Under the pieces are notes generated by a model, which saw nothing but the letters and a program-made list of their open reading frames with translations, was not told the origin of the DNA and made no database searches. A DNA stretch of 64,000 bases, taken from NCBI GenBank assembly GCA_946965045.2, contig OX337229.1:5766001-5830000 (forward strand). Reading direction: 5' to 3'. Positions 11,037-31,715 of this stretch are shown in pieces. A program made the position numbers and the translations under genes. This stretch comes from Epithemia pelagica. Its lineage: Eukaryota > Protista > Bacillariophyta. How positions within the stretch are numbered: the first letter of the stretch is position 1; each line of letters starts with the position of its first letter.

Positions 11037-11598
11037 CGAGGTGCCGGGTTGATTGATGGTTCGGATAGAGTTGCTCCGTCCCCTTTTAACAATGCATTTT
11101 CCTCCTACTCGTCATCTCTCAACCCACCTTCTCCACCCATCCCTCGTCGGTCAGCGCAGCATTTCGACTCAAGTGATAATGATCCCATTATTTTACCGAT
11201 CCCCAAGGTCCCAGTTCCATTGATTCCCCGTGTCTTCTCCGATGAGAAAAGGATTTCATCCTCAGACGTTGCCTCCAAAATCTCGCCTCATGTCCGTTTT
11301 GTCCCCAAATTCCAAACGAAAATTTTCGACAAGATTGAGCCGGCGTGTGCCATACAAGATTCCATTTCCCCCAAGACAGATTTCGCGACCCCTTCCATTC
11401 TTCGTCGAAATTCTTCGGAGCCCGATCCTAATCTATCTCAGCTTGACAGTTCCGATGACCCTCCCCCAAACCCCCACCAACGCTCTTCTATTATGCCCCC
11501 AAGTTCACAATTTCTGGAATCCATCAAAGAAGCTTTAATTCGGAATTGCACGCAGGACGATTCGCCCTTTTCCCATTCGACATCTAAGGAAGGAACGG
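11037..11598 (+). pseudogene. N-terminal Pro/Ser-rich part of the YR pol frame, interrupted by the Plavaka element
   Basis: Same frame as gag after a single TGA. Joining 11598 to 30002 gives the in-frame sequence SKEGT-GPISLLRW continuing into RT. Confidence 0.65.
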
Positions 11599-11680
11599 TA
11601 CGCCAGTTTATGGCGGTTTAATTATCGATAAGAAAGCACCCCTAAGCGCATCCTACTAGAATCATCCGCGCGCAGGACAC

Positions 11681-11890
11681 GCGCACACCTACAAGAACAT
11701 GCGCACACCTACAAGAACATGCGCATGGCCCTTCCTCACGTTATTACTAAAAATGTGCTTTCCAGAACCAGCAAGCGCATGACCCACATTTCACCAACTT
11801 CAACACCATGCACAGTCAAGAACCAATAGTCATCACATCCCTCCACCTTCATGCACAGTCAAGAACCAACAGTCATCACATACCCTCCTA
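11681..11890. repeat. Left subterminal direct repeats of the Plavaka element
   Basis: gcgcacacctacaagaacat x2 (11681-11720), and catgcacagtcaagaaccaa(t/c)agtcatcacat x2 (~11807 and ~11850). Confidence 0.85.
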
Positions 11891-12088
11891 TGTATGCACT
11901 CATCCTTGATTGTGTCACATCACCATCATGCGCATTACTCCAGCATCAAGTGCAAGCAAGTTGAACACAGTGCATTTAACTAACACCATGCACACACTCC
12001 CACTAACAACCAGCGAATGAATGGAACACAATACATGTAGCTATATAGGAGTAGTATATGAAATGAAACCAATTGTCATTCTGATCAA

Positions 12089-14081
12089 TCACTGCCACGA
12101 CCGTTTTCGTGGCCTTTTAGAAGGCCTTGTCACAGCATCATCATCTGCATACCCCATTCGAGAGCGATATTGCCCATTGAGAAACATCATGAACCAGATA
12201 CCGCGGTCGCCTGCTCTGTCTTCACGAGCGATTTTCTCTTCCATATCCTCAAAATAGTCCATACCATCCTCATTCATACATCGACTTGAGTTCCAACTGC
12301 CTGAATATTTGAAGCGAGGATACCTTGCTGAGGATGTATCAATCATTTGATCAACACCATTTTCATTGTACCACCTTGGATTTAATTCAAATAGTTTCGC
12401 CTTGAAAGTGGTCTTGCCCATGTGAGTCCACACATCCCAGCAATCCACAAGGATGGTCAATATGAATGCCTCGTCACTTGAAGTGAATAACTTCAAGGCC
12501 TTTTCGCAATGTTCCTTTCCCTGCTGCTCAGTGTGGTCACCAAAATTGAAATCAATCACGGTTTTATGCATATTCTCACCATAGACACATGGACCAAACA
12601 ATTGCAAGAGATATGAATAGGGATAGTTGTCACACTTCTCTCCTCTCAATAACAGAAATTCTTCCAGGGTAGGCATTGGCCCAAAGTCTTCACAGTCGTT
12701 CAAAAGGCATGGATACCTCCGCTGGAAATTACTGTCACGCCATAGATCAAGACCCACATGTTCTAGATTCAGCAACAAATTATCTCACATCTCTTTATGA
12801 GAAGACGACATGATGAACCAACACATTCACTCTTCGATTGACACTTACTTATAAATGCTTTTCGCATGGAAGCCAGAACATTTGATCGTTTGCTTCGGAA
12901 CTTGTCAAGCATATAAGGTGAATGTTCAATCCACCACTCCTCTTGTTGTTTTGCATCCGTAATGCCTTTGCCTTTGAAATAGTGCTCAGTAAAATATGTT
13001 TTGCCATACTTCCCCCAAAGACCATTCGGATCTGCCTTAGTATCTTCGGACATGGAGAAATACTTGACATAACGCCATGCCACCTTCCGAACAAATGTAT
13101 CAAAGAACTTCTCCGATACCACCTCAGGCTTTTTCTTCGGCTTTTGCTTCTTATTCTTGTCCTTTTCGACAGAACCTTTGTGTGTAGTGGATGTTACAAT
13201 CGTACTTGTCGGGCAAGATGATTGATTATGGTGTACTGTTGTTGTCTGTGTTTCCTGTGCCAACTGATTTTGAATATCATCTTGTAGAAGAGTTTCCATC
13301 GCCTGATCAGGCCCTGTTGTTAGCAAAGTAGATGATGAAGATGACGACATATCCGAAAGGGAAGAAACGTCGTTAGCAAAGGTATCACCTGATGCATTCA
13401 ACCCACAAACACCCCCGTCATTAGAGCCGTCTCACCGACAAATTGTCCTCCTCTATTTTGTGCATCTAACAACTTACTGACAAGTCCTCCAGCAGGAAAA
13501 TGTCTCTCATTAGGATCAAAATCATCTCCATCATACTCACTGGGTCCATTGCCCATATTCTGCAATGCTCGTTGCATTTCAGGTCCAGTGAGAATATTTA
13601 CACCGACGTCGTCCTCCTCCATGTTATTAACTGCCGTGTTTGTTGGTTGCGCAAAACCAGATGATGGTTGTGTTCTCAGCCCACCCTGTTCATTATTGCT
13701 ATCATCTGCTGAAGTCACATCGGCTCCATCTCTTTCTGAATTTGTTGCCTGCTCCAAAAGATTACCACTCCCTTCCACAGTTGTGCCTTCTTGTGCTTGT
13801 GCTTGATCGTTGTTCATCGAGATCTGTTCCTCTTCTTCCTCGTCATCAGAACTATCTTCTTGGAGTACTAAACCTCCATTGGCTGCTGCAATAAGAGCAT
13901 CTTTGTTTGTAATTGTCCCGTCCTTGTTAGGAAGATTCTCTTTATTTCTTGTTGCCACTGCTGCCAAGATGCTTCTTCGTTGTCGTTCAACCTCTTTCTG
14001 ATTACTTCCATAGTTTGCATTTCGGACTGCTAAGGGTCGACGCCTCGTTGGAGCTGCATTTCTGGTGGTGACTCCTGCCAT
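12089..14081 (-). CDS. Three-exon accessory gene of the element (~605 aa, unknown function), divergent from the transposase
   Basis: Predicted exons 14081-13478, 13388-12849, 12762-12089. Introns GTAAGT...CAG (89 bp) and GTAAGT...TAG (86 bp), both phase 1, join three ORF-track fragments in frame. Motifs WW...KRSNV...M...F and SDEAF. Confidence 0.65.
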
Positions 14082-14645
14082 CGTTTATCTTGGATGCTCC
14101 GTCTGATTTATGACAAGGACGTGAACAAGAGCAGGGTGACAACAAGACCTCTGATGGACAACCATTCAAATTCAAACGCTGGAATGCTCCATGTTTGAAT
14201 CATAAACTCCGTGTTTGAACGATGGTCCTTTAGAGAACGTATGAAGATGAGCATAGGTGGTTTCAAGTACATCATACTTGTCAGATGGAACATTGGTACA
14301 TGGGTTTGAATGATTGTCATTTCCTTTCTAATGTCGACAGTGTCGGTATCCTCGGCATTGACACAGTGTTTGAATTCCAATCGCTGCTATCACCGTTGGT
14401 ATCTAACCCGGCAGGCTGGATTGGATTAAGTAAATACACACGACCGTTTGAAAATATTATGATCCGTTCATGTACATAAGCGATTTTCAGTCGCTTTTAT
14501 GCACCAACGTCGGCCGATCCACCCAATGCGGAGAAATTCTGATATATGCCACAAGATTGACCACCGATGTCTCAATTTGCAGAAATCGATTACAGAGCAT
14601 TTTTCATTACAAACCAAAATCTAAAACCACCAGCATCGTACCATC

Positions 14646-17600
14646 ATGGGCCAGCGTCGTAAAGTAAAAAAGAAGTTGCGAAAGAGATGCTCAAATACAA
14701 GCCAACAAGAGGAGTCCTTCATATCCTTTCAAGTGTGTCGTTTCTGTCAATCACGTTTCGATGCAAGAGGAATCAGCCGTCACGAAACAGTTTGTGAATT
14801 GAAAATGAACACCCAAAGGAAATGGCCAAATGTTGGCGATGACAACAATGATTGTGCCAGTAATATGAATGCTGATCCAATGAATATTGATATCATGGAC
14901 GATGAAACCACTATTCCGCATGCTGACCCACCAAAAGCATACTATGTACCTGGTGATACAGATAATATTATTCTGCGCAACAGCAAGGAGTGCCCGGTTG
15001 ATTTTCCTGCGTTCCTCGATAGAGATGGGAAGCAATTGAAACTTCATAAACACGATGCAGCCTTGGTCTCACTTATGATGTTACTTCGGAAAGCTGGTTG
15101 CCCCAAATATTTGTACAATTCGATCCTGGCATGGTCGAGTGACACATACTCAAGATGCGGTCCTGGGTTCTTCCTGGACAACCATTCAAAGAGGAAAACG
15201 TTCATCGAAAAGTTTTCTTCCAAAGGTTTCAATTATCCCAAGGCCAAATTTTTCCCGGTACCAATGGAATTCACCCAAAAACAGGGTGTGGTTGTACCAG
15301 AGAGTGAGAAATCAATAACAACACCAGTATTTGATTTGATCAGTCAACTACAGCGTGTATTACAAGATCCCGATGCAACCAAGAAAGAAAATACGATCCT
15401 CGATGATGACGATCCGTATCGTCCATATGTTCCAAACAAGCACATCCAAAATATACAAGACGGAGAAGTATTTTGGAAAACAGTGGAAAAATATAGAGAT
15501 GATCCAGATGCCTTCGTGGTTGGTCTTGTCTGTTATATGGACAAAACACATGCAACAGGGGATGGAAGATATACATCGGAGCCTGTTGTAATGGTGCCAT
15601 CTTTTCTAACGGAAACACAAATGAGGAAAGCAAGGCGACAGATCATCCTTGGGACTATTACAGACATGGAAAGAAAATCATCAGCGGCAAAACATATCCT
15701 CGATAAAGGGACTCCTTGCCGAAATTATCATGCTCAATTGACTAAGATCCTCGAAGGTCTTGTCAGTATCCAAAAACAGGAAGGTTTATGGATGAAACTA
15801 CGTCTCCATGGGATTATCAAAGTTGTCCGTTTGATATTGCCAATGATTGTTGTCAAAGGAGACGGGAAGTCTCAGGATAACCTTGCAGGTCGGTATGCCT
15901 CGCATCATCCAAGTGTTGGAAGACTATCATGGTGTTGCAACATTAAACCAAGGGATAGCAGATACCCATGGCATGAATGTTCTTATATCAATGCTGCAAG
16001 TACATACAAAATGTGCTTGAATGCATTGGGTCTTAATGAAAATCGAGAAAAACTGACTGAACAGGATGTTGATTACCAAGAGAGAGACAATGATACATTT
16101 TCGACTTTGACTGTTCCTACCTGTTTGAGCACATCGCAAGTAAGTCAAGAAAATAGCAGAGATGGAGGGGTCAATACTCTTGTGTCAGCTGCAAAAACCC
16201 AATTGCATGACATGGGACAGTATGCAGTCGATCTTTGTTTTTCCAAGGTTTACCTGGGTGAAGGAACCAATTCTGAACATGGGATTTTCTCGGCCAGTAG
16301 TTGTGATGTTCTTCATACATTGAAATCTGGGATAATGAGATACATCATGATTGACTTTTTCACGTTGATGACAAAAACTGAACGGGCCATGTTTGATTAT
16401 GTCTACAATTCAATCTTTCGGGCAAGTAGACAGACTGTATTCTCGTATTCATCGAAACTTGGATATCCCGGAACATCATTCTCGACCGGGATCAGTAACC
16501 TGTCAAAAGTAACTGCCAATGAGTGGGTTGGGATCATGTTTGCTTCAGCAGCTCTATGTGCCACTGCCAGAGGTCGCCTTATATTCGCGAAGAATATGGC
16601 AAAGAAATGGAACAAGGTGGTTGCGGAATGGAAAAAACGACAAGCAAAGCAAACATCCAAAACCACCAACAAGACATGTCAAGCGGACTTGGATCAAGTG
16701 CAAGAGACAAGTGAACCTATTGCTGACAATGAGGATGATACTCCACCAGATGAAGAGTACGAACGTACACGTCTTGATGATGATGATAGTGTTGACATTG
16801 ATATCACAGCTGAAACTGTTTTTGATGATGACCCAGTTGCTTACAGGTCTATCTGGGATGTTGATGAGCGGGAACCATACATAGACTTCCTGCATCTATT
16901 CGAGACTCTTTTGTGTTTCAACAGCTGGATTCGTATGGATACATTCTGGGAAACAGACCCAGACTCACAAGAAGGACAAACAACAGCATCCAAGTCTCTC
17001 GAATCAGTGCGGATTTTGATGGATGGCATCAGGAGATATGCACCCAGGCTCGATAAAAAAGGCAAATTGATGTCCAACGGGTGGATGATACCAAAATTCC
17101 ACAATCTCATACACATTATACAACAGATTCAGAATTTTGGACCAGCACGACTGCTTGATGTGGAGTCAGAGGAAAGTAATCATAAGGAAATTGTGAAATT
17201 GAATGCAAAAACGGTACAGAAACGTGGAAAAGGAATTTTTGAGTCGCAACTTGCAGAAAATATCTGGTGGATGCAAAGCTTGGAAATGCTGCAGGAAGCA
17301 ACAGGTCTTGAAGAAGATCATGTCACCTTTCTCCAGGAAGGGAAGTCGCCTTATGAAATAAGGAGAAAAAAGGGATCCCAAAACCAACTCCCTACCACAT
17401 CAACCTTGAATAGCCGTGGAACGGTCATAGTAGTATCCATGACCAGAGAAAAATGTTTGATTCCAGTACCTCACACGAACGTACATACTTCTGGTGATAA
17501 TCAAGACCAGTCATCAGATGAAATAGACAAGGATCTTCCGTCTCCATTGGGTATGTCGATTCAAGTTCCAGGCACGACCAGAAAAGAACAAGACGGATCA

Positions 17601-18503
17601 AACCGAAACCAGACGAATAGTGTACACAGGCGATTGACAGCAGCACCACACGAGGAGGATGTGGTATCAGTGAATATCGAATTCCATTCCAAAACAAATC
17701 ATGACATGACATTGCCACAGTTTTGTAATCACTTCTTTCGATTACATTACAAACGCTTTTTTCATCATATAGACGGGATGAGTGATGATCCAACAAATGA
17801 GACTTCAACCACACTGGAATTGTTCGGGAGCACAGAACTTAAGTTCGAAGACCCCAGGATAGGAAATATACGGGCTCATCCGAATTATCAAAGCGAGGGG
17901 CCATGGAGAGATTGGGTGATGGCTAAAGTTCCAAAGAAAAAAAGGAAACCTCTTGATGAGGTATACAACCAACCTCTCGGAGAATTTGATACCATCCTAT
18001 GTCAAACGATATGCTTCATTCAAATACCCATTACTCGAACAGACCACATACAAATGCAACCATCACCGGTATGTCAACCTTCAACTTCACCCGAGATGAC
18101 CCATGTCCTTCTCCGAACAACATATGTACGGAGTACAGCTGATATCGAGAAATCATCCGTTCTCTTTCAAAAATGGCGTAAGCGTTTTGACCTACATCGA
18201 ATAGCTGAAATTGTCATGGTTCCACTCCGGAATATTATTGAGGTTGTTGGTGTAGTGGATGAGAACCCAGAAATGATTCAAGACCGTGATTCTATCCCAA
18301 CATATTTCCATTCTTCACTTGAAAAAGATTTACTCCAAGAAGACAGTCGTAATTTGAGAAAGTTTAGTGACAATGTCTGGGCCGTACGCAACATCAAAGA
18401 ATGGGCTTCCGAATTCAATGAAAGTGCCCGTGACAATCTCGAGAAACGCTGTAATGAAATGAAAGAAAGATTGAAACAATCCGTCAGCAATTCGACGTCA
18501 TGA
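14646..18503 (+). CDS. Plavaka-family (CMC/EnSpm-related) transposase, intact
   Basis: 1285 aa. N-terminal CxxC...H...C finger, then YMDKT (first D), KGDGKSQD (second D), DVLHTLKSG, IPKFHNLIH...FG...ESEESNHK (E) and RAHPNY...WRDWV, matching the motif order of Plavaka transposases. Confidence 0.85.
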   Translation: MGQRRKVKKKLRKRCSNTSQQEESFISFQVCRFCQSRFDARGISRHETVCELKMNTQRKWPNVGDDNNDCASNMNADPMNIDIMDDETTIPHADPPKAYYVPGDTDNIILRNSKECPVDFPAFLDRDGKQLKLHKHDAALVSLMMLLRKAGCPKYLYNSILAWSSDTYSRCGPGFFLDNHSKRKTFIEKFSSKGFNYPKAKFFPVPMEFTQKQGVVVPESEKSITTPVFDLISQLQRVLQDPDATKKENTILDDDDPYRPYVPNKHIQNIQDGEVFWKTVEKYRDDPDAFVVGLVCYMDKTHATGDGRYTSEPVVMVPSFLTETQMRKARRQIILGTITDMERKSSAAKHILDKGTPCRNYHAQLTKILEGLVSIQKQEGLWMKLRLHGIIKVVRLILPMIVVKGDGKSQDNLAGRYASHHPSVGRLSWCCNIKPRDSRYPWHECSYINAASTYKMCLNALGLNENREKLTEQDVDYQERDNDTFSTLTVPTCLSTSQVSQENSRDGGVNTLVSAAKTQLHDMGQYAVDLCFSKVYLGEGTNSEHGIFSASSCDVLHTLKSGIMRYIMIDFFTLMTKTERAMFDYVYNSIFRASRQTVFSYSSKLGYPGTSFSTGISNLSKVTANEWVGIMFASAALCATARGRLIFAKNMAKKWNKVVAEWKKRQAKQTSKTTNKTCQADLDQVQETSEPIADNEDDTPPDEEYERTRLDDDDSVDIDITAETVFDDDPVAYRSIWDVDEREPYIDFLHLFETLLCFNSWIRMDTFWETDPDSQEGQTTASKSLESVRILMDGIRRYAPRLDKKGKLMSNGWMIPKFHNLIHIIQQIQNFGPARLLDVESEESNHKEIVKLNAKTVQKRGKGIFESQLAENIWWMQSLEMLQEATGLEEDHVTFLQEGKSPYEIRRKKGSQNQLPTTSTLNSRGTVIVVSMTREKCLIPVPHTNVHTSGDNQDQSSDEIDKDLPSPLGMSIQVPGTTRKEQDGSNRNQTNSVHRRLTAAPHEEDVVSVNIEFHSKTNHDMTLPQFCNHFFRLHYKRFFHHIDGMSDDPTNETSTTLELFGSTELKFEDPRIGNIRAHPNYQSEGPWRDWVMAKVPKKKRKPLDEVYNQPLGEFDTILCQTICFIQIPITRTDHIQMQPSPVCQPSTSPEMTHVLLRTTYVRSTADIEKSSVLFQKWRKRFDLHRIAEIVMVPLRNIIEVVGVVDENPEMIQDRDSIPTYFHSSLEKDLLQEDSRNLRKFSDNVWAVRNIKEWASEFNESARDNLEKRCNEMKERLKQSVSNSTS

Positions 18504-18698
18504 TCATAATTTGCCTCTATGGGGGGTTGTCACATACCAGCACTCCCCTCCTAATCTCCCCCCCAACCGTACGCGAGCCGACCAATTCAACTCAGAGTGT
18601 CACACACAAATTGGATGAAATAGTAGATACTTTCCATCGTTTTCCAAAAGTCATCCTCAGTCTTCAGTCAGTAAGGCTATTCTACTCCTCTTCAAACA

Positions 18699-19826
18699 AT
18701 GATCAACCCATACAAATCGAGGAAGAAAACAGTTCCACCCTTGGTGGTCAAACCAAACTTTCCAGTCACAAAGATACCTCCATCTAATGAAGAAATGATG
18801 ATCAACCCATACGAGCTAGAGGAAATAGAGACCCCCATGGTCAAAACGCACTCTCCAACCCCGAAAACTTGCGACGGTGAACATGACAAGAAGCCACCGC
18901 CTGCGTCCAAATCAATAATCAAATGTCATCCACTTCCGTCTTCTAAGCTTGATACCAAGGAAGAAGAGGAGAAGAAACTTCCACCAATCAAGCGCCCATC
19001 GTATCAGTTGATCCCAAACCCATATAAGAAGAAGCTCAAGGTTGCCGATCCATCTACTATTCCAATCTTGCTATTACATGACTCTCCTCCAATGTGTAAA
19101 CCAAGAGCAAACCGAGATAAGCTGCATCTCGAAGTTATTCGGTTCACTGAGCTTGTCAATAAAATCTATGGATCCAATGATGTTCCCCCAGAGCCAGTCT
19201 GTCCTTGGTGTTTTGTAACCGACAACCTTTCAACAGATCGTAGACTTACAGGAAAATGTTGGCATCGCTTCGGTAAATCTCTCTCATGTGCCGATTGTTG
19301 TTATGGTTGTGGAGTGCCCATGAACGGATGTGATTCAGGTGGGAATGAACGTTGTTGCACCGAAGCCCTGTATATCCATGATTCGATGAATATCACACGC
19401 GAAGAATCAGACATAAACAAGGTTCCATTGGTGTGTAAGTCTTGCTTAAGGCCATGCAATTCTTATTCAGAATGCGTCTTCTCGCATGGTTGTTGGAACT
19501 CTTGCAACAAGTACTTCGTCTGGCGATTCTGTCATATTGCTGGACGGGCGTTGGTGTACTCACAATTGAAGCCCAATTGCAAAGGACCAGGCACGATTCC
19601 CAAACATGCACAGGATATTATCAAAAACGCAACAGAGTTGATGTACAACGAACTGCGAGATCCGATGGAGTCTTCTCAGTACACATCTCCATTTTGTCAT
19701 GTTCTTGACCAAGACTCCTGGTCTAAATGGCTTGTCTCCATGTCTTTCGGTCGATACTACAATTACATGCCGTTCTTCCGTCATTGTTACACAGCCTTGA
19801 TGTCTTCATCGAAACCATTGTATTAA
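18699..19826 (+). CDS. Cys-rich putative Zn-binding protein (cargo, paralogue A)
   Basis: 375 aa, many CxxC pairs, C-terminal NKYFVWRFC...ELR...WSKWLVS...NYMPFFRHC. Confidence 0.7.
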   Translation: MINPYKSRKKTVPPLVVKPNFPVTKIPPSNEEMMINPYELEEIETPMVKTHSPTPKTCDGEHDKKPPPASKSIIKCHPLPSSKLDTKEEEEKKLPPIKRPSYQLIPNPYKKKLKVADPSTIPILLLHDSPPMCKPRANRDKLHLEVIRFTELVNKIYGSNDVPPEPVCPWCFVTDNLSTDRRLTGKCWHRFGKSLSCADCCYGCGVPMNGCDSGGNERCCTEALYIHDSMNITREESDINKVPLVCKSCLRPCNSYSECVFSHGCWNSCNKYFVWRFCHIAGRALVYSQLKPNCKGPGTIPKHAQDIIKNATELMYNELRDPMESSQYTSPFCHVLDQDSWSKWLVSMSFGRYYNYMPFFRHCYTALMSSSKPLY

Positions 19827-19887
19827 ACAAACTCTCGACTTCTTCGAAAGGCAAACTGGGAACAGATAACAAGATTTATAATATATG

Positions 19888-20955
19888 TCAATGATCATTA
19901 CCATCCATATTTCCACGTTCCAACTCCGCCGTCTCAGCCATTCTTTCGAGACAATTACGGAAGCACCTGACAAAGAGTGGCATGTAGTTGCGAAAACCAG
20001 CCGTAGAATGAGGCAACGAAAGCAACCATACTGCCCATGTTTTATCAGATGCTCGGGCATAATCGTATGGGGCACAATCGTTATCATCAAAATAGAAACG
20101 GGATCGCAATTCCTCAAGCCAAACGCTGCGGACAATAGTAAACATTGACCAGGTGATTTGACGGGGAAAGTTCACACCATCGTAAAATGATGTTATTTGA
20201 AAAGTACGCGCCACAATATGGCGTATGAGCATACAGAACTGCCACACGAAGTGCTTGTTCTCAGATTCCACACAGACACTGCATGAATCCAAATCTGGTT
20301 GTGGAATCCCAAAAGGTATTGAGCGTTCGGGAATTCGGAAACATTCCCTACACACCTGACAATGAAATGTTGGATGCCTGTGGCGGTGACATAAGTTACA
20401 ACGCATCAAAAAATTCTGCTGCCAGATAACTGAATAATCGAGATATGCCGCACGTGTTACCACTGTAGTATTTCCATGATTGCACTGGTGATGTGGTGTG
20501 GGACGACCAAGGATAACACAGTATGGACAGAGTTTCTCGCCTCTAAGCATTTCGTCCACCAACCGTTTGAATTCAGTCTGGATTTCATGACCGACACGCA
20601 TCTCTTCTCTGAGTTGTTCTATGACTTGTGGTACATCTTCTTCTTCATTATCGTAATCAAAAAAGATCCTCCCCGCGTCCCTGAAACAAGGCCGATCATT
20701 CACTTCCAAGTTCCTGTCGTTGATCGCCCGCATTTCTCGTCGTCGTCTACGTTCCCGAACATAAAAATCTTCTTCCTCCGATTCTTCTTCCTCCGATTCA
20801 TCTCCCGATTCATCCTCCGGTTGGTCCTCTGGATTGTCAGCCATTCTGTTTGCAGTCTCCTTCTCTTCGTTTTGCTGTGAATGCAAATACCTGTACTTGT
20901 TGCTTCTTCTTTGGATTTTTATGAAACCTCTGCTGTCATATGAACGAGAGTTCAA
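19888..20955 (-). CDS. Cys-rich putative Zn-binding protein (cargo, paralogue B)
   Basis: 355 aa, CPYC and further CxxC/H motifs, C-terminal NKHFVWQFC...ELR...WAVWLLS...NYMPLFVRC. Confidence 0.7.
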   Translation of the reverse strand: MNSRSYDSRGFIKIQRRSNKYRYLHSQQNEEKETANRMADNPEDQPEDESGDESEEEESEEEDFYVRERRRRREMRAINDRNLEVNDRPCFRDAGRIFFDYDNEEEDVPQVIEQLREEMRVGHEIQTEFKRLVDEMLRGEKLCPYCVILGRPTPHHQCNHGNTTVVTRAAYLDYSVIWQQNFLMRCNLCHRHRHPTFHCQVCRECFRIPERSIPFGIPQPDLDSCSVCVESENKHFVWQFCMLIRHIVARTFQITSFYDGVNFPRQITWSMFTIVRSVWLEELRSRFYFDDNDCAPYDYARASDKTWAVWLLSLPHSTAGFRNYMPLFVRCFRNCLERMAETAELERGNMDGNDH

Positions 20956-21436
20956 CTGGAAATAGATCCACGGATAACCGATCGGTCGCGTTTGTGTACA
21001 GAAATCGTCACACTATACTATTCACTGTGAGTATTACCACATACTGTGAGGATAAGTGTAATCATTCCCAACATGGTCGCGTTTCACTCGCTGGGCTGAC
21101 CTATCGGTGTGGCTTTGCAAAATTCCATGGACATGGAACAATGACATGCTTCTAGAACTCGAATAGCTCCAAATTTTCGTATAGACCATTTGGGTATCAT
21201 TTGCATGGACGGTAAAGGCTCTGAATTTGTCTATCATCAACCAAAAGACTTGCAATAGACCCTACCGGTGTGGTGTTGCCGTCGTCCCAAAATTCTATGG
21301 ACATGGAGCAAAGACATTCTTCTAGAAATCGAATGGCTCCAAATTTTCTAGAGGTCCTTGGGGTATCATAGGCATTGATTGATGGTAGGTAGTGGTTTTG
21401 CTGATAGGTGGGCATGGTCTTGTATATTAGAAATCT

Positions 21437-24400
21437 CTATTCGTCACTAGATTTCTGGTCCGACGCCAAGCCTCCAATTTCATGAGAATTGTCATCCTCG
21501 TTTTGTGTTACGGTAGCACTCAAAGATCTTGCATTTGTGCTAAAAAACCAACCAATCGTATGATTTCCCACATTCTTGTCTTTCGGTGGTATGGAGTGTG
21601 TATGGACAGATGTTCCATGTCTGATGATTCTCCCGTCCCATGCGATCGCAATGCCATGGAATAACCGGATACAAAGCCCATGATAAGTCTTGTCCTTATG
21701 CTTTATAAGGACATTGGGAAGGACGAAATACCAATTGTTGGTGCTGCCCGGGTTGGTTTCTGTCCAGATTGTAAAGGACACTGATGCATCATGAATATCA
21801 TAGTGGCTTGCATTCATCAAATCGCAACTCAAAATGATGGATGATGACACACCCCTTTCGTTTCCTCCCAATTCGTTTGGGACATCCAAACCGAAGTTTG
21901 TTTCCAGGTGTCTGAAAGCCGATAACACACCAGGGAATTTCCTCTCACAGAATCGCCGAACACCTCCACAGATTTTTGGCAATATATTCATCATGTTTGG
22001 AGATATTTTGAAAAGTTTGTCAGAAAAGAATGTACTTCTGCCACCCGTTTTTGTGCACACACCAACAGATGTCATGGTCCCCATATCACCATGGTTACAC
22101 CTTGCATTGGCTGATCTCTCTAGTGTACCGCTCTGCGCGAAGTGACATGACCTCTTGTGTAACAATGAAAGTAGGTTTTTGTCATTTTGCTGAAGTGTTG
22201 TCACTTTGACATGGCTGATGGTTTCGTTTTTACCCGCGTACCCACGTGTCCGAACAATGAATGTTGTATCTTCTCCGGTATCCCTTACATCAAACAGGAG
22301 CGGACGGACCGAAGTATCAGGCGGAGGGGACAGGTTTCTATACAATGCTCCATGGACGTACTTTCGGCATCCAGTCTTGTTAGCACTGGCTTTATTCAGC
22401 AGTGTTTCACGATACCACACTCTAAGAGAATGTTGGTCATTTGGTGTCATTTTTGGTCTGGACTTTTCACTTGTGTAATGATCAGGGGCCCAAAGTGGAG
22501 AACCACTTTCAACATCAGACGCTTGGTAGCATTCATGGACAACTCTCTTTGCACTTTGTGTCCAATCAATACACCAACACTTGATAACCTTTTTGAGGAA
22601 TGCCCCACCACTTGGTTGGCCGTCGGAATGTCGTAAGCGCAGCCAGGATATAGGTAGTGCTACCAAAGATGAAGTGCATTCCGATGTTGCATACCCAGTA
22701 TTCATTATCATTGCCGAAGTATAAAAAATACCGGCCAAAGGGATGATAACGATCACGTCATGGAAAATATGGTCCATACAATCATCACAGTTTTTCTTGG
22801 ATGTGCGACAATGGAAGATTGTATCGTCAAACGCAGACCACACGGTTTTGGGGTATTTCCGATGTCCCTTATGTCGTTGACAGCGATTCAGTACACATTC
22901 TACCAAGAAGGCACATGGAGACCGGGTTGTTAAGAACTTCGGGTCACATTCTGTCACATGAAGCTTGTTGTCTTCGAAACAACAATGGCTTGCTGGATCT
23001 TCCGTCACCTCACCAACCATGTCTTTCATTTGTTCGTATATGTTAGGTAATTTTCCCATGATTGTCTGGAGGTCTGTTGGTGTGATGTCGTAGTCTTTCA
23101 GAACCTTTGTATAGCAGATGCCGAACATTCTCCGATCATCATTGCTACTGAGACAGAGTGATAGTAAGTCGCGTAGTCTTTTTGCTACCTTGTCCATGTC
23201 AGGAATTCCAAAAAAACACATTTCTGTATGATCGGATTCATTTGGTTTGGAGAATTTTGTCGTCAAATGGCTAGGTTTCTCAGCCTGTCGTCTCTTATAC
23301 TTCTTCATCGTTTCATGTGTTAGTGTCAACTTCGATAGGCCCTCTTGTCGTCGTTGCTTGTTCGTGGGTAGTCCCCTGGATGAACCAATGGTCTTACATT
23401 CTTTTCTTTTCCTTTCCGGTGAAGTATTCTGTTCGTCAGTATCGTCATGATTACCGTGTATTGGAGATTTGTGAATCTCCTTCGTACCTCGTTCGTCTTG
23501 TATGCGCTGATCCGTTTGTTTTGTCGTGTTGATGCTACTTCCCTTGTTATGGTCGTTTTTTGTCATTTGGTCATCGTTGTTCTTGTTGCTACCTTTTTGT
23601 TTGTCTGTACTATCCTTTCCTTCTTTGGTTTGTGTCGCATCATCTTGGTTGACACTGTCATTGTGACAGCTAGACGGATTATCACTGTCAGGTGTGTTGT
23701 TGGCATTCTTAGACCCGTTCTCTCCAGAATTTCCGTGTTGTTCGTAAGCAACAATCTCTTGCTTGCCACATTCCTTGCCCTTTTGTTTGTCTGTAGAACC
23801 GTTGCCATCTCTGCTTTGTATCTCTTCTCCTTGTCCACATTCATCTTGGTGACTGGAGGTTGCTTTCTGACCGCTCTGTCTGTTCCGATCATCCCTCTCC
23901 TGATTGTCCTTGGAATTCCAACCAAGTTTGGATAGGCCATCCTGCCCTCCACGACTCGCTGTAGTGTGATGAATGTCCTTTTCTCTCTCTCTACGAGGTG
24001 ATTGATTTGGTTGACTATTACCTCTATCAGTTGAGGGACGGTTAGGCTCTCTCTGACGGGTACGCCTAGAATGATCGTTGTGTCCAGGATGACTGTCTCT
24101 AAGTGACAAATGGTGCCTGGAATGTTCGTTGTATCCAGGGAATCTCTCCCAATCCATCGGATCCATCGGATGTCGATTAGACCATTGATTGTGGCTATCT
24201 CTATATACCAAATGGTGCCTTGTATGTTCTCTCGAATGTTCGTTGTATCCAGAGAATCTCCTCCAATCCATCGAATGTCGATTAGACAATTGATTTTGAT
24301 TATCATGTCTTCTTTTTCTATCCCGGTAAGTGTTTTCCATGATTTGATCTCTTCTCCCTCTAGACTCGTCTTGGTGGTTATCATGGTATCCATGTTGGTC

Positions 24401-27400
24401 TTGTCGTTCAATGACTCCTCTTCTAGTTTGTTGGTTATCTTGATCGAAATGTGAATGACGAGACACATGATAATCCGATGTATTAGATCCTCTCGATCCT
24501 GGATGATCATCATTGAATCGATTCTGTCCATGCTTACAAAACACTGGCCTGTCATGTTCAGGTAGCGAACCCCACTCATTTGTTCTGGGGCTTCGAGTTG
24601 TCGACAGGACGTTGTTCAGATTCCGTCCTCCCCACAGCCCATGTGGATTCTCTCTCTTGTCCTTGGTTCTTTCGTTATCATGTTGGGTTTGCTCTGTTCT
24701 ATGTCTTTCTTCGGGCAGCTCACTCCGGTTACCCCAATTCGCAGGCATTGCAACGGAACGTGATGAGTTATTTCCTCCCCATTGCTGGTATTTAGGCTTC
24801 TCACCCTCTGGTGACTGATAGATTGCTTTGTGTTCAGAAGGATGAGTATATGTTCTTTGAACAGAACGTGTCATAGGACAGAAGTACAATAGACTTTGAA
24901 TATCCTGGCTGCACACCATACATGTGTTGTGGCCCCGCTGCATCCAATCTCCAACACATTCCCGACAAAATGTATGTCTACAAAGAAACAGTTCGCAATC
25001 CACTTTTCTGGTCATACAAATCGAACAAACCTCGGGCTTGTATTTTGTCTCAACTCCTCTTTGTTCTAGTGTTGATGGCTTGTTACTCACGGGTGATTTT
25101 TTTGATGATTCTTCAGGGCGTCCCTCAATCATAGTTGTAGTGTCTTTGACTGTTTTCCTATGTCCCTCTTCAGGGAATCCCTCGCTCGTAGTTGTAGTGT
25201 CTTCCGCTGTTTTCTTGTGTCCCTCTATCTTCTCCGCACCAAACATGTGGATGTTACTCTTGATCTTTTGTCCACACTGGGGACACCATACATTATGATA
25301 CTTGAACCGTATTCGTAAGCAATTTCCGTGAACCAGATGTCCACATGGGATGAGGGTACAGACTTCGCTGTCTGTATCTGTTTTCAATGCCCTGTTACAG
25401 CATACACAAGAATCTGGACAATATACAACGGTCGGTAGCAATCGATTTATATCTCTCTTGGAAAGTTTGGAGTCAAGTAACACCTCCTTGGGTTCTAATC
25501 CCACCCTCGGGCACGGTATGAACAATATGTCACCATCCGTAGTCCACGTCTCTGAACACCCACCATCAGATAGATCGACGTTCTCCTGGTATTCGTATTT
25601 ATCGGTACCACGTGAAAACCCCACTTCAACAGGATCGTCGTCGCTGTTGCCATTGAAATTGTCAGGTCCCAACACCAAAGGAGAAATCGAATTGCCTTCA
25701 ACAGCATGCTCTAGTCCTCTCGAAAATTCATTATTGTACCGTATTTGATTACTCGAAAAACAATTGGATATCGTCATACTCTTGTCTATCTGACCTTCTT
25801 TCCGACCCGGGTTTGGTCGACTACTCATTATGTTTCCAAGCATTCTGATCACAATAGCTTGTGGCATTGGCTTTGGAGTATCCTTCTTAGGTTCTGGCAT
25901 TTTCACAATGCGATATCGCCACTTGTTATATTCCTTGTTTGTATCATGTGTTGTTTCATCTTCTTCCACTAATGATGGGTCATAACATAGACTGACAGGC
26001 GGGGCACCTTTTGACGTATTGACCAGGTCCCATTTCCGTAGTACATGACGCGTCGTTCCTTCCCAGTATTGGTCTGATCGATTATGTATTGGTTCGTAGA
26101 TATGAAGTATCTTTTTGTCGATTTCGAAAGCCAATAAAGCTGGGTCGCTGACATCAGTTGCTGTTGTCAAGGCAATGATCGCCAATATCAGTGTGTTCGG
26201 ATCCTGTTGTCTCCACGATGACATAGGAATTTTCTTAGGAAATGGGTTCCTGTTTGCTTCATCAAATGTTACTTTGTCAACATATACTAGGTTCTGATGG
26301 TTGTGATGGACCATCAATTTCAAACAAGTATAGAAAGACTCAATCGGCATGCCCACCCTTGAAGTGTTGTAGCAAAGATCTCTCCGACGATGTCTATGTG
26401 GGATATGCAAAACACGCGTTGTAGGGTCCTGGTCATTCATCAACCCACTGTAAGACATGCATAGTGTGCACCTAAATAATGTCTTGATTTCGACATGCGT
26501 GTTGTCCTTCCCCATACTCTTAGCATACTGGGTTGCTAGCTTCATGGCCGACTTGATGTTCTCGTTGTTTCTGTTAGTTTGTTTTTCCGCGAACTTGTCC
26601 AAGTAACCGTCACCAATGTTGTCGATTAATTCATTCGAGTCCCATGAGTCTTTTCTTCTCTTCTGGTTTACTATAGGATCAAGAACGTGTGGAATTTCAA
26701 TGAAAGGCTGTGGTACCACACCATCACCTGTCTCCTCAATTCCCTTGTTTATGGAAGCACAACGTCTCTAAGACAAAGAGATCAATCATTTTTGAGATTG
26801 TCTAATCCTTCTCGATTCTTGGCAAGTCGCTCGAACATCTTACCTCGTTGTCTGCGGTTTTTTCATTGTCGTCGCTTATAATCTTCCTGACCTCTTCCAC
26901 ACGGTCTGATTTGAGGGCAACTTGGTTCGACGTTGTAATGGAAGTTGGTAGTACTTGATCCTTTTTCTCGTCAGTAGGATCATTACCAGCGACGACCTTC
27001 TGTCTCTTTTTTGCCGGCGAGTCTATACTCCGACGTTGCACGGCAATTTCTTTCGATTTCCTGGCAGACAGTACCTCTTGTTTTTCTATATAATGCAGTA
27101 GATCGTAGAACATACCGCCATCGTCTCCGTTTCTTCCATATTGTACCAAAGGATCTCTTTCTTCAAGGTACATCTTGAACCATGTGTCAGGCATCGTATA
27201 CAACAGTGCTTTCTCCATTTGGATATTGGAAATCACGTCCATGTTCTCGTCCGATGTCGATTCTGAGATGAAACGGTGTATGGCCACCATATGTTCGATA
27301 ACCCATGCGATTTTACCAACAGGTACGAGACGCGGTTTCCTGTAAAGGGAGGAATCATCTAGAAGGTATCGTTTCAATGCTTCTCCAATCCCACCGATCC

Positions 27401-27968
27401 CCTTGCGTGTCTTCTTAGAGACTAAGCCATGAGAGGAAAGAAATCTGATAATGGTTTGTCTCAGATTCTCAGCACCGTCTATCACTGTCGTCCCAAATGC
27501 CTGATTCCAAATATTGGAAACAGGACTGTAGAGAGTCTTTTTGAACAACAGTCGAGCAACCATTGGAGTCAACTTGTCATCATCATCCATCTCGTTCTTA
27601 ATTCTTGTGAAACAGAAAACGGAGTGACAGATGATATCTTGGAATGCAGGCGAATAACAGATTGGTAGGAATATCTTCACATAATGGCCGTCATGTGGTA
27701 CCTCCACTGTTGTCCATTTTCCTGATTTGTCTTGGAATACACTTTCATACCAATTGAGGACACTTTCGTATGTAATGGGCATAATACCGGTGTAGTGAGA
27801 TTCCTCGCTTGTGTGTGTTCGAAGTGTATGATTGGTACCAGAAACAGTCATAGTCGACACGTCCTTTCTTTTGTTTCGCACTTCATCATTCATTGAAGAA
27901 GGGTCACCAGGATTCTTGGCGGTCGGTGGTTTTTTGTAGCGAGGGCCCTTGATGCGGTTGCCCGCCAT
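21437..27968 (-). CDS. Spliced multidomain protein (~2151 aa): unknown N-terminus, possible inactive Ulp1-like region, RING-H2, RING-HC, low-complexity region, C-terminal TET/JBP-like 2OG-Fe(II) dioxygenase
   Basis: Exon 27968-26844, phase-0 76-bp intron GTAAGA...TCTTAG (26843-26768), exon 26767-21437. RINGs at 25274-25408 and 24911-25027. NASHYDIHD (HxD at 21797-21805) and RHGTS (His at 21617-21619), preceded by GDMGTMxxxG. Confidence 0.72.
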
Positions 27969-27985
27969 TTTGTACTTGTCACGAT

Positions 27986-29282
27986 GCGCTTTTTGTGTAG
28001 CGTCTTTGTTTCAACAACAACAACAACAAGGGTAGTCGAGGAAGCGCTTTAATTGTAGCGTCTTTGAGACAACCTTGTGTACTTGTCTAAACAGTAAAAA
28101 GTGTGCGCTGAATTGTGTAGCGTCTTTGGTTTGGTCCTGAACTCTGGTGGTAACAAAACAACAACCAAATCGAAGGAATACACTACGACGCGCTTTATGT
28201 GTAGCGTCTTGTTCGTTGTGATCCAAACAATCGGTGCCAGAATTTGCTACTCCAAAACCAGGGGTTGGTTGGTTGTCCAAGCAATCTCGCGACAAGAATA
28301 GAACAGAAGCAACTGGCTACCACCGTGTCACACTGCTTGCTTTGGGTCTGTTCTATTCAAGTCCGAGTATCACGAGGACAGGAGGGTTCTTGATAAACAA
28401 TCTAACAGATAGCCCGAAACCGCTTCAATTGTAATAGCGTGATTGGAGTGAAGGACAGAGCTGAGTGAAACAAGCAACAATCAGACAGATGCCCCAAGCC
28501 GCTTTAATTGTAGCGTGGTGATTGGAATGGCAGAGCTGCAAGATAGTGCAAGTGTCAAAGATAGGACAAATGTCGACAATATTTCGAATGCTCTGGTGGT
28601 CGTTCTTCTTCTTGGGTTCCTCTTCTTCTTGTTTTCCTGTTGTAGCGGTTTTGGAGTGAAGGTCGTGGTTGAAAGGAAGCAAGCAACAATCAGACAGATG
28701 CCCCAAGCCGCTTTAATTGTAGCGTGATTGGAATGGCAGAGCTGCAAGATAGTGCAAGTGTCAATGTCTCGAATGCTCTGGCCGTGCTTGAGTTCCTCTT
28801 CCTCTTCTTCTGGTGCAGCGGTTTTGGAGTGAAGTGTTGTAGCGGTTTTGGAGTGAAGGTCGTGGTTGAAAGGAAGCAAGCAACAATCAGACAGATGCCC
28901 CAAGCCGCTTTAATTGTAGCGTGATTGGAATGGCAGAGCTGCAAGATAGTGCAAGTGTCAATGTCTCGAATGCTCTGGCCGTGCTTGAGTTCCTCTTCCT
29001 CTTCTTCTGGTGCAGCGGTTTTGGAGTGAAGGTGGCTGAAGAGGAAGCAAGCAACAAAAAGGTGGCTGAAAAGGAACCAAGCAACAATCAGACAGATGCC
29101 CCAAGCCGCTTTAATTGTAGCGTGATTGGAATGGCAGAGCTGTTAGGTTGATGAAAGAAGTTGGATAGGTGAAAGGATTGAAAAGGGAATCTCGGCAGAG
29201 AGAAAGCAAGCAACAAAAAGGTGGCTGAAAAGGAACCAAGAAACAATCAGACAGATGCCCCAAGCCGCTTTAATTGTAGCGT
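27986..29282. repeat. Array of 10 CGCT-N8-11-AGCGT mini-palindromes; the last five sit in a longer degenerate tandem unit
   Basis: Copies start near 27986, 28044, 28105, 28190, 28421, 28500, 28709, 28906, 29107 and 29266. The unit caatcagacagatgccccaagccgctttaattgtagcgtg occurs five times. Confidence 0.9.
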
Positions 29283-29998
29283 GATTGGAATGGCAGAGCT
29301 GTTAGGTTGATGAAAGAAGCTGGATAGATAATGGGATTGAACAGGGGAATCTCGATAGCGTTGGGTGATCGATTGTTGTTGTTGCTGCTGCTGTTGTTGT
29401 TGTTTGTTGTGGTGTGTTGGGTGGAGGTGGAGGGAGATGAATGAGCATCGATTCTGGTGGTCGTTGATTGTTGAATGACTAGTATGCTAAGTTGTTCGGT
29501 TTTGTTCGATGGATCAGAGTGTCGAGTTGGTAATCCCCGCGGTTTGGGTGATTGGGAAGGAGGATCCATCTGAGACATTCTTTGGGACATCCATGTGCGT
29601 CAGTCTTTCTGGCAGCTGCTGTGTGATGTGGTGGGAGTGGAAATTCGTGATTCAAAGGTGAGGGGACAGACGCTTGCGCATGAGGGTTGCGTCATGCGCG
29701 TCTCGGGGGGGTCGAGCGCGCCAGATAGTTGTAGTGCGCATTATCGGAGTGTGGCGCGCGTTATTCGTGGTTTGATCGCGGGCTTGTGCGCATTAAAATT
29801 GTGGCATGCGCGTGATAGTCAGCTCGATCTCTAGAACTAGCTAGAGAAATGTGCATTGTTAGACCTAGATTTGCAGATTTAGTTGGGAAAGCAGGATTAT
29901 AGTTAAAAACTGCGCATATAAAAATAAACTGCGCATAAAAAATTTTAATTCGGCGAATTTTTTCTAGAAATTCGCTTTTGGGGGTGGAAATCAAGCGC

Positions 29999-31715
29999 CG
30001 GGGCCCATTTCCCTCCTTAGATGGAATGATTCCCCAATTATTCCATTCGGCAAACCTCGTCCACTTGGTTCCCCATCCCCTACGATTTCCTCTGACCTTT
30101 CAGGGAAATCGCTACAGAGAAACCTATCACGCCTCCAAAACGAACTAATTGCTGGTGAAGAAATGCTAGGTGAGTCTAATTCTTCCGATCCTCTATCTAC
30201 TCCCGAGAACCCTAGTTCTCCTCCCGTTGACTTTCGGGAATCTCTTCCAAACGACCCAGCGATAATCTTTGTCAACAAGATCCCACGGCCACCCAAGAAT
30301 CCACCCAAACACCTCCATTCCATTACCACCATCAAGTCCATTTGTTCGTCCATTGTACCCACGCCGTCACCATCCCCATTCCGACATGAGACGTCCGAAT
30401 CAGCTGCCGAATTCAACTCCAACTTAATCGCAAGCTTTGATCACAATCTCCAACGCCTTTTCAACGCATACCCAGGGACTACGATTAGTCCTGGCTCCAA
30501 ATTTCGTCCATTGAGTTCTATTGCCCCACTGTTACGTCACCATCCGTTCTGGGACACGATTCAAGATACTCTCCGCAACGGTGCACATTACGAATTCAAG
30601 GAACTCCCACCTGACGAAGACAGACAACGAGAGAATGACGCTATCCTCGCATATGGGAACCACGCGTCCGCGCGATTACGACCCGATGCCTTAGTGAAAG
30701 TGTGCAAAAAGGACACTCGATTTGGATATGCCTTCCCCATCACTTTCGATTGCGCGCGGTTGTTGGATCAAGGCCGTGCAGGCCCCTTGGGAGTCGCACA
30801 GCATCCTGGTATCGATGAACATGGGAACATTATCGTCAAAGACCGTCTTGCCCACGATCAATCCTTTTCGCTAGGCTTCGCCCCGTCTTTGAATGACCTT
30901 GTTGACGAATCAGGCCTCATTGATTTGGTGTTTGGTTGGTGCATCGATCGCATCATTCACCAGATTGTTGCGTTGCGCATTAAATACCCCGACAAGCGGA
31001 TTCTGGTTTGCAAGTTTGACTGGGGGTCGGCCTATCGTCGCATCAATGGTGACGGTATCCTTACATCCAACACCATCACAACGGACGCAAGTGGTGATTT
31101 TGCGAACCTTCTGACGAGGCTCTCATTTGGGGGCCGCCCCCACCCAGCGATGTTCAGCGCCTTCTCCGAGGCTGCGTGTGACTTATGTAACGACATCGCC
31201 GATGTTGATGAATGGACTCCCGAAGTTTGTCGTTCTCCACTGCAAGACTTGATGGGGGAGATTCAGAGGATTGACGACTCGGTCCCTTTTGCCCCCGGCC
31301 TCCCGCTAGCGGTCGACGTTGACGCCCGCCCACAAGGATACCATGATGTGTATATTGACAATATGGTACAGCTGTTCTTAGACTGCCAAGAACACCTCCG
31401 TCGGGCACCCGGCATAGTCCCACTGGTTCTCCACATGCTCGTCCGCCCTTCTGCACCAGACGAACCAATTGACAGGAACGACATCCTCGCCGCGGATAAG
31501 ATGAAGGCGGAAGGAGCCCCATCGGAGGAAATGCGTGTCCTTGGTTGGCTGATCGATACGAGGAGATTGTTGATTCGGCTTCCCTTCGATAAATACACAT
31601 GTTGGTCTCGCGAAGTTCGCGAATGGCTCGAGCCCAAGCGAACATATATCACGTTCCGCGACCTGGAGAGTCTCCTGGGGAAGATGGTTCATGGTTGCAA
31701 ATGTATACCCCTTGC
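29999..31715 (+). pseudogene. YR (DIRS/Ngaro-like) reverse transcriptase, right part; truncated and catalytically mutated
   Basis: RT motifs KDRLAHDQSF, KFDWGSAYRRI, LSFGG, VYIDNM (YxDD changed to YIDN), LGWLIDT. The sequence breaks off at 31715 into host duplicate DNA. No RNase H core or recombinase follows. Confidence 0.8.

Follow-up and report, generated by a model that had tools for sequence, protein, structure and literature searches.

The 64,000-nt stretch of the Epithemia pelagica genome analysed here (contig OX337229.1, positions 5,766,001 to 5,830,000; hereafter the window) contains an 18.4-kb transposable element that encodes both a transposase and a divergent dioxygenase. The element is a real, recently active, multi-copy cut-and-paste transposon, and we regard it with high confidence as a Plavaka-lineage transposon that carries a TET-like gene. 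The account that best explains the data as a whole, an intact Plavaka-lineage transposon equipped with a TET-fold anti-silencing enzyme, appears fairly probable. Within this account, an action of the enzyme on 5-methylcytosine (5mC) to counter silencing is the likeliest function, one for which we see about equal grounds for belief and doubt. Silicon transporters (PF03842, up to 755 bits) are encoded in the genome by at least 10 full-length genes, and the genome is therefore that of a diatom, as a preliminary description of the window had supposed.

Ends and transposase of the element

The genome (60.5 Mb, 23 contigs) was searched with the first and last 800 bp of the element. At least 22 left ends and at least 24 right ends were retrieved, mostly with 91–100% identity and paired on the same contigs. 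Eleven copies were read, about half of the at least 22–25 present in the genome. When the ends were aligned with those of 10 other genomic copies, the sequence common to the copies was found to begin at position 11581, opening CATCTAAGGAAGG... (= CATCTAAGGAAGGAACGG), and to stop at position 30023, closing ...CCCTCCTTAGATG. The termini are 15-bp imperfect inverted ends, CATCTAAGGARGGAA, in which 14 of the 15 bases are complementary. Nine of the 10 bounded copies are flanked by a perfect 2-bp duplication, which is GA in four cases (including the window copy), AG in two, and AT, TA and CA in one each. A rearranged copy (G000:C16:3130030-3144150; L030+L031) has ACTC on both flanks and no matching 2-bp duplication; these flanks could be an aberrant 4-bp duplication, or the copy could be a recombinant of two copies.

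The junctions had earlier been placed at 11596/11599 and 30001, and the true edges lie 15–22 bp further out. It had also been argued that excision restores the frame of an interrupted host gene, with the residues SKEGT and GPISLL meeting at the join. Removal of the true element plus one duplication does leave an open host open reading frame (ORF) of 790 amino acids (aa). The SKEGT and GPISLL residues, in contrast, come from the terminal inverted repeats of the element and not from host sequence. Because the proposed and the true excision differ by 42 bp, a multiple of 3, the frame argument holds by luck.

The 1285-aa transposase has no Pfam match even at E ≤ 10, and its relationships were established through its homologues. 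An exhaustive phmmer search with the central 1100 residues against 1.84 billion representatives yielded 1429 relatives at E ≤ 0.001, including 147 below 1e-30. The transposase matches P0047 at phmmer E 3.7e-53, and P0047 in turn scores 46.9 bits with PF18759 (Plavaka; cut-off 26.3) across positions 15–318 of 325. PF18759 is matched by 10 of 20 aligned relatives (best E 4.6e-14), other transposase families by none of the 20, and the language-model neighbours of the transposase are Plavaka clusters. Residues invariant in the 20 relatives are D299 (Y-x-D-K-T), D406 (G-D-G-K-S), E843, the pair H819-x3-H823, C431 and C445. D299, D406 and E843 are candidate catalytic residues, between which H819-x3-H823 and C431/C445 lie. 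The window transposase has CC at positions 430–431, where some relatives show C-x2-C.

The termini read CATCT..AGATG in all copies read, with four of the five terminal bases as in the PlavakaB consensus. Plavaka elements generally have 5'-CA..TG-3' ends; PlavakaB has CATCA..TGATG ends with 2–3-bp duplications, group A has TGT..ACA ends with 2-bp duplications, and all TET-carrying Plavaka families fall in group B (PMC12730594). The ends and the 2-bp duplication of the diatom element fit PlavakaB. Membership of the transposase in the Plavaka lineage, a part of the CACTA/EnSpm-Mirage-Chapaev-Transib (CMCT) clade, is transitive and is supported by sequence relationships. The Plavaka assignment made in the preliminary description is upheld in this form, through P0047 and half of the aligned relatives, together with the PlavakaB-like termini and duplication length.

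The TET/JBP-like module and its likely action

The C-terminal part of the 1760-aa ORF is a TET/JBP-like module, the extent of which is set by free-standing homologues of 550–700 aa that align to residues ~1140–1740. The module also finds no match in Pfam at E ≤ 10, including PF12851 (Tet_JBP) and PF20515 (2OG-FeII_Oxy_6); one of 20 module homologues touches PF20515 with E 0.0014. Only ~30 homologous clusters were recovered in a word-indexed search, all consisting of unnamed metagenomic or ENA proteins without Pfam domains. Judged by its sequence, the module forms a separate, unannotated clade that curated profiles miss. Across the 20 homologues, which share 27–39% identity, H1639 and D1641 (H-x-D), the distal H1688, R1697, R1700 and H1701 are invariant or nearly so. 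H1639, D1641 and H1688 make up an H-x-D...H triad of predicted iron ligands. R1697 and R1700 sit 9 and 12 residues past H1688 and are conserved in at least 90% of the homologues.

A structural model of the last 499 residues of the ORF (window 21437–22936) was built with AlphaFold2 (AF2) on the homologue alignment, with a predicted local distance difference test score (pLDDT) of 75.8. The triad, numbered H378, D380 and H427 in this piece, is on the expected strands of the model. Foldseek matched the model to TET2 (E 3e-10). VIA-align likewise gave TET2 (Z 19.3, 293 residues aligned), followed by NgTet1 (Z 15.8), CcTet (Z 15.3) and CMD1 (Z 15.2), with AlkBH3 and FTO as the next family (Z 10–11). 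Among Atlas folds, the closest are a basidiomycete cluster without a name, a diatom cluster, one cluster with PF20515 and phage clusters with PF12851. By modelled fold and metal site, the module is a predicted TET/JBP-type enzyme, and the C-terminal domain named in the preliminary description is borne out by this fold together with the iron-binding residues. Direct searches with PF18759 and PF12851, which had been proposed as checks, left the window's own proteins unmatched even at E ≤ 10. Read to the letter, this outcome goes against the preliminary description, which had named a missing TET/JBP profile match as a ground for refutation; both assignments were rescued by the structure comparison and the transitive searches.

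The following mechanism may be proposed. The DDE transposase would presumably cut at the CATCTAAGG... inverted ends, paste the whole 18.4 kb elsewhere and duplicate 2 bp of the target. The diatom would methylate CpG on transposons, and the Fe(II)/2-oxoglutarate (2OG) dioxygenase of the element would oxidise 5mC on element DNA to 5-hydroxymethylcytosine (5hmC) and further. This oxidation would remove or blunt the silencing mark, and the transposase and cargo would stay expressed. The RING fingers, the cysteine-rich proteins and the internal tandem repeats may, speculatively, target or assist the oxidation.

The copies themselves carry information on the substrate. Among aligned copies, 8.4% of CpG sites show transitions, compared with 2.0% of the remaining C/G sites and 1.2% of A/T sites, so that per site CpG transitions exceed other C/G transitions 4.2-fold. 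An excess of this kind is the signature of 5mC deamination, indicating that the copies are or were CpG-methylated and hence that 5mC is available as a substrate. The C5-DNA-methylase family is represented in the genome by at least 5 loci above cut-off.

Several points weigh against a TET-type enzyme that keeps the element unsilenced. Neither the transposase nor the TET-like protein reaches any Pfam threshold for its own assignment. No solved TET was recovered when a profile of the TET-like clade was compared with PDB sequences, and R1697 and R1700, the candidate 2-oxoglutarate-binding residues, are assigned as such purely from conservation. The excess of CpG decay also shows that the enzyme does not protect the copies fully, since they carry, or once carried, methylation in its presence. 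A review lists 5hmC as undetected in diatom DNA (PMC9033121), and Naegleria has a TET-like enzyme of proven activity yet no detectable 5hmC (PMC12344493). The function of transposon-borne TETs in fungi is itself a proposal only (PMC12730594). There are no RNA runs on record, and the three runs that contain the sequence are DNA-type contigs in which the repeat is collapsed; the few 'joints' in these contigs are single low-support contigs.

Part of this evidence could be read in another way, namely that the fold is the same and the enzyme is not a 5mC eraser. It might hydroxylate thymine (JBP-like), add glyceryl to 5mC (CMD1-like), demethylate N6-methyladenine (as CcTet can) or act on RNA, and the outcome would be a hypermodified mark on element DNA or transcripts in place of demethylation. 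We consider such an activity unlikely, while a serious candidate, and the same holds for its outcome. The fold matches to CMD1, CcTet and NgTet1 are about equal, the clade is too divergent for Pfam Tet_JBP, divergent transposon TETs may not behave canonically (Kojima, PMC12730594), and the reported non-detection of 5hmC in diatoms (PMC9033121) agrees with it. However, TET2, which oxidises 5mC, leads the structural matches by 3.5 Z units. In addition, no glycosyltransferase or other hypermodification partner was recognisable among the cargo in Pfam scans, and with CpG methylation of the copies indicated, 5mC is the substrate at hand.

The 1760-aa protein could instead act mainly through its RING fingers, as an E3 ligase that targets either the transposition complex or chromatin or silencing proteins of the host, with the dioxygenase as a DNA- or 5mC-binding targeting domain of little catalysis. 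One RING finger passes its Pfam cut-off, a second is evident, and the N-terminal 1139 residues of the ORF are under some constraint (omega about 0.4–0.55). The RING and N-terminal region are, however, absent from family B, a second family in this genome described below, and from all environmental homologues, which keep the dioxygenase module only; the metal-binding residues of the module are moreover invariant. Since only the dioxygenase module is conserved across homologues, the essential part would be the enzyme, and a primary role as E3 ligase is improbable.

Retention of the cargo and movement of the element

At least 50 TET-like loci, falling into three groups, were found in the genome. 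The first group is the window element's own family, with at least 16 loci at 96–100% identity, and all of those examined are located inside bounded copies. The second group, family B, has ~12 loci at ~49% identity, each situated 2–14 kb from a transposase ~61% identical to that of the window. The TET-like loci of the third group are 35–39% identical, encode 620–650 aa and have no such transposase nearby; they may belong to another element type or be domesticated copies. Eleven matches of the third group cluster within 85 kb on G000 contig C5 (about 847–932 kb), and the other loci are scattered.

Family B was read at one locus, on ENA contig L052, which belongs to a second assembly, either of this genome or of one nearly identical to it. 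The gene order is that of the window element: homologues of the accessory gene g1, transposase, cysteine-rich gene, repeat array, second cysteine-rich gene and TET gene. Protein identities to the window element are 35–50% for g1, 52% for the transposase, 40% and 31% for the first and second cysteine-rich proteins, and 42.5% for the TET protein. The RING/N-terminal part of the 1760-aa ORF and the 388-aa ORF were not found at this locus. The ~170-bp repeat is present in ~20 tandem copies in family B (L052:15826-19623) versus 2 in the window element.

Selective constraint was estimated from variants among the copies. Crude omega values are 0.1–0.5 for every ORF, with small counts and CpG bias included, and variants shared by at least two copies give 0.09 for the transposase and 0.37 for the TET module.

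A member of the TET clade adjoins a Plavaka-family transposase in 8 of 10 informative environmental contigs (L044, L049, L050, L051, L059, L063, L069 and L071; profile E 1e-20 to 1e-112), and the two genes are on opposite strands in every case in which orientation was examined. No Plavaka-family transposase stands beside the TET gene in the L045–L048 family and in L065, and the linkage is thus frequent and not universal. In L045–L048, which are ENA metagenome contigs, the neighbour of the TET-like gene encodes a conserved 1066-aa protein in which neither a Pfam domain nor any similarity to Plavaka transposases was detected, and one of these contigs has a copia-type reverse transcriptase downstream. 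L045–L048 may represent a different carrier element.

The second family, the omega values below 1 and the recurrent environmental pairing indicate that the cargo is kept for a reason. The accessory genes are shown to be retained under constraint, and the enzyme and the transposase to have been co-inherited over the long term. It is accordingly very doubtful that the cargo consists of functionless passengers, host genes picked up once by Pack-type capture. Most cargo ORFs do lack a recognisable domain, as such passengers might, but a single capture sits badly with the conservation of this gene set in family B, whose proteins are no more than 35–52% identical, with constraint on every ORF and with the repeated TET–Plavaka pairing.

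The copies further demonstrate that the block moves as one unit, as the preliminary description had proposed. Six copies of 18.0–18.5 kb at different loci are collinear with the window copy, share its two ends and have their own 2-bp duplications. The four shorter copies (15.2, 14.2, 11.9 and 8.0 kb) derive from the full element by internal deletion and retain both ends. One further copy, on C6 (~18.1 kb read), is collinear and lacks the terminal bases of the right end, and it was left out of the count of bounded copies. Identity of the examined copies to the window copy is 98.7–99.7%, and the copies on C17 and C11 align with it end to end at 99.6–99.7%. Since the six full-length copies at unrelated loci are collinear over their whole length with the same two ends, and no internal segment has inverted ends or a duplication of its own, a composite of separate nested insertions is effectively excluded.

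Among the 11 copies, every ORF is open only in the window copy and the C17 copy; the others contain stops, frameshifts or deletions. The presence of an intact transposase and of several intact cargo ORFs, as stated in the preliminary description, is confirmed; the intact ORFs have 1285, 1760, 375, 355 and 388 aa, plus 227, 210 and 229 aa. The window copy is intact, represents an autonomous transposon and is probably still mobile. At window position 24152, in the low-complexity linker of the 1760-aa ORF, 9 bases are absent in contigs of two public DNA runs, a difference that is an in-frame length variant among copies or strains.

Related systems and further features

The closest known counterparts are the TET-carrying PlavakaB elements of Agaricales (Agaricus bisporus, Gymnopus confluens; Kojima 2025, PMC12730594). 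Both have a Plavaka-lineage transposase, CATC..GATG termini and a 2-bp (2–3 bp) duplication. In both, the inverted ends enclose a TET/JBP-like dioxygenase so divergent that it is identified chiefly through its structure, and escape from methylation silencing is its proposed role. They differ in host (a diatom, hence a stramenopile, here and a fungus there) and in the fifth terminal base (CATCT in the diatom versus CATCA). The diatom element is 18.4 kb long with at least 5 further accessory ORFs, and its 1760-aa protein joins the dioxygenase to two RING fingers. No named fungal homologue of the diatom TET module was recovered in the homologue searches, the closest Atlas fold being the basidiomycete cluster.

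The KDZ (Kyakuja/Dileera/Zisupton) elements with TET/JBP genes in Coprinopsis and other basidiomycetes offer another parallel, a transposon-driven, lineage-specific TET/JBP expansion (Iyer et al. 2014, Chavez et al. 2014; as summarised in PMC12730594). Coprinopsis has 46 TET/JBP copies, compared with the at least 50 TET-like loci of the diatom genome, and the Coprinopsis enzyme CcTet is among the best structural matches of the diatom module. The KDZ transposase, however, belongs to an unrelated superfamily, and Pfam finds only Plavaka among the relatives of the diatom transposase. The duplications also differ (8 bp for Zisupton), and the KDZ TETs are recognised by Pfam, unlike the diatom module.

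The giant Plavaka elements of the red alga Bostrychia moritziana (17.4–19.1 kb; bioRxiv 10.1101/2025.02.11.637652) share the unusual size of the diatom element. Both carry several accessory genes (PAG1-3 in the alga) that include a 2OG-dependent oxygenase, with an accessory set conserved across families, and both have tandem repeat arrays next to accessory genes, which the ~170-bp repeat of the diatom recalls. The algal PAG3 is described as combining a ParB-like DNA-binding domain with a generic 2OG oxygenase whose best hit is not a TET, whereas the predicted fold of the diatom module is specifically TET/JBP. Pfam scans found no N6-adenine methylase or SET gene (PAG2) in the diatom element. 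As an analogy only, VANDAL of Arabidopsis is a DNA transposon with its own factor, VANC, that undoes methylation of its own copies (as cited in bioRxiv 10.1101/2025.02.11.637652). VANC is a sequence-specific DNA-binding protein and not an oxidase, and the transposon is of Mutator type.

No description of such an element in diatoms or other stramenopiles was found in the full-text literature, papers mentioning Plavaka included, a coverage outside which most subscription journals fall; the earlier impression that no stramenopile case had been described is in line with this. New here are the host supergroup, the sequence-distinct TET clade, the RING fusion and the larger conserved cargo. So far, characterised TET/JBP genes in DNA transposons come from fungi only, and their presumed role there is to undo methylation silencing. 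In the diatom the element is fully bounded and recently active, two diverged families are present, and the 60-Mb genome has at least 50 TET-like loci; this case widens the pairing beyond fungi, and the pairing recurs in many unidentified environmental eukaryotes. It also points to a specific enzyme that may carry out base oxidation or active demethylation of DNA in diatoms, in which the TET pathway is unsettled, and the intact, TET-deleted (among them those on C18, C2:6.06 Mb and C16:3.13 Mb) and decayed copies within one genome are a natural experiment on the effect of the enzyme on copy methylation.

A broader and more speculative reading, which we think unlikely to hold in full, would join these points. 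Diatoms, generally treated as lacking a TET pathway, would owe all of their TET-like genes to Plavaka. A self-contained anti-silencing cassette, made up of the dioxygenase (here RING-fused) and cysteine-rich DNA-binding partners aimed at the element's tandem repeats, would make oxidised methylcytosine specifically on these elements. The third group of TET-like loci, including the C5 cluster, would be domesticated copies used by the host, and the TET–Plavaka partnership would be ancient and spread over several eukaryotic supergroups, through vertical descent or horizontal transfer.

Table 1. Features of the transposon and its flanks in the window (window coordinates).
Feature	Position	Strand	Basis or remark
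Left 2-bp target-site duplication, GA	11579..11580	.	same dinucleotide after right end
Whole transposon, 18,443 bp	11581..30023	+	common sequence of all copies begins and stops exactly here
Left terminal inverted repeat, CATCTAAGGAAGGAA	11581..11595	+	14/15 complementary to right end; identical in all copies read
Left subterminal repeats: 20-bp + 43-bp tandem, three TGCGCA motifs	11677..11930	.	
Accessory gene g1, three consecutive ORFs of 227, 210 and 229 aa	12089..14081	-	same layout intact in all 11 copies
Putative Plavaka-lineage DDE transposase, 1285 aa, N-terminal C2HC-like zinc finger	14646..18503	+	
Cysteine-rich accessory protein, 375 aa	18699..19826	+	intact ORF; omega about 0.12–0.14
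Cysteine-rich accessory protein, 355 aa	19888..20955	-	
~170-bp repeat, 2 copies, between cysteine-rich genes and TET gene	21118..21379	.	
1760-aa ORF: N-terminal region, two RING fingers, ~520-aa low-complexity linker, TET/JBP-like module	21437..26719	-	
TET/JBP-like dioxygenase module, residues ~1140–1760 of 1760-aa ORF	21437..23302	-	
C3HC4 RING finger, residues 563–609	24893..25033	-	PF13920 31.0 bits vs cut-off 27; PF00097 27.1 vs 21
Second RING-H2-like Cys/His cluster, residues ~434–484	25268..25420	-	read from sequence; Pfam zf-RING_2 in two stretches, below cut-off
Accessory ORF, 388 aa, no recognisable domain	26802..27968	-	
Tandem array near right end, ~5 units of 160–209 bp	28439..29354	.	
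Right subterminal TGCGCAT motifs, 5 copies	29675..29935	.	
Right terminal inverted repeat, TTCCCTCCTTAGATG on + strand	30009..30023	-	end alignment of copies
Right 2-bp target-site duplication, GA	30024..30025	.	matches left copy

The remaining features of the element are listed in Table 1. Ten TGCGCA motifs are present in the element, eight of them within 350 bp of an end. Such a pattern of subterminal motifs and repeats is the usual appearance of transposase-binding regions in CACTA-like elements.

A Pfam scan of all element ORFs at E ≤ 10 returned the RING finger only. The linker of the 1760-aa ORF (residues 620–1140) is of low complexity and rich in R, S, N, D, Q, G, H and E. For the N-terminal ~430 residues, an Atlas feature search with residues 1–450 gave no usable match, and a single-sequence fold of the N-terminal 620 residues reached a pLDDT of 31. 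The g1 ORFs have no Pfam match at E ≤ 10 either; as their three-ORF layout is kept in all 11 copies, they may be exons of one gene. The 375-aa and 355-aa cysteine-rich ORFs are weak paralogues (E 9e-9).

The host ORF interrupted by the element (window 8166–11580 and 30026–31866) belongs to a dispersed repeat whose copies, at least 10 in number, have diverged to 64–76% identity. An empty site was looked for and none was found, the closest paralogues of the flank being only 64–76% identical. Apart from a weak CCCH zinc finger upstream, the host ORF has no Pfam domain; reverse-transcriptase models of Pfam do not match it, so the label 'retrotransposon pol' given to it earlier is unconfirmed. A Y-I-D-N motif hints at a degenerate reverse transcriptase, which nothing confirms. 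Antisense to the host repeat, a 478-aa ORF on the minus strand (window 31649–33085) has a RING-type zinc finger (PF13445) with 25.9 bits against a cut-off of 25.2.

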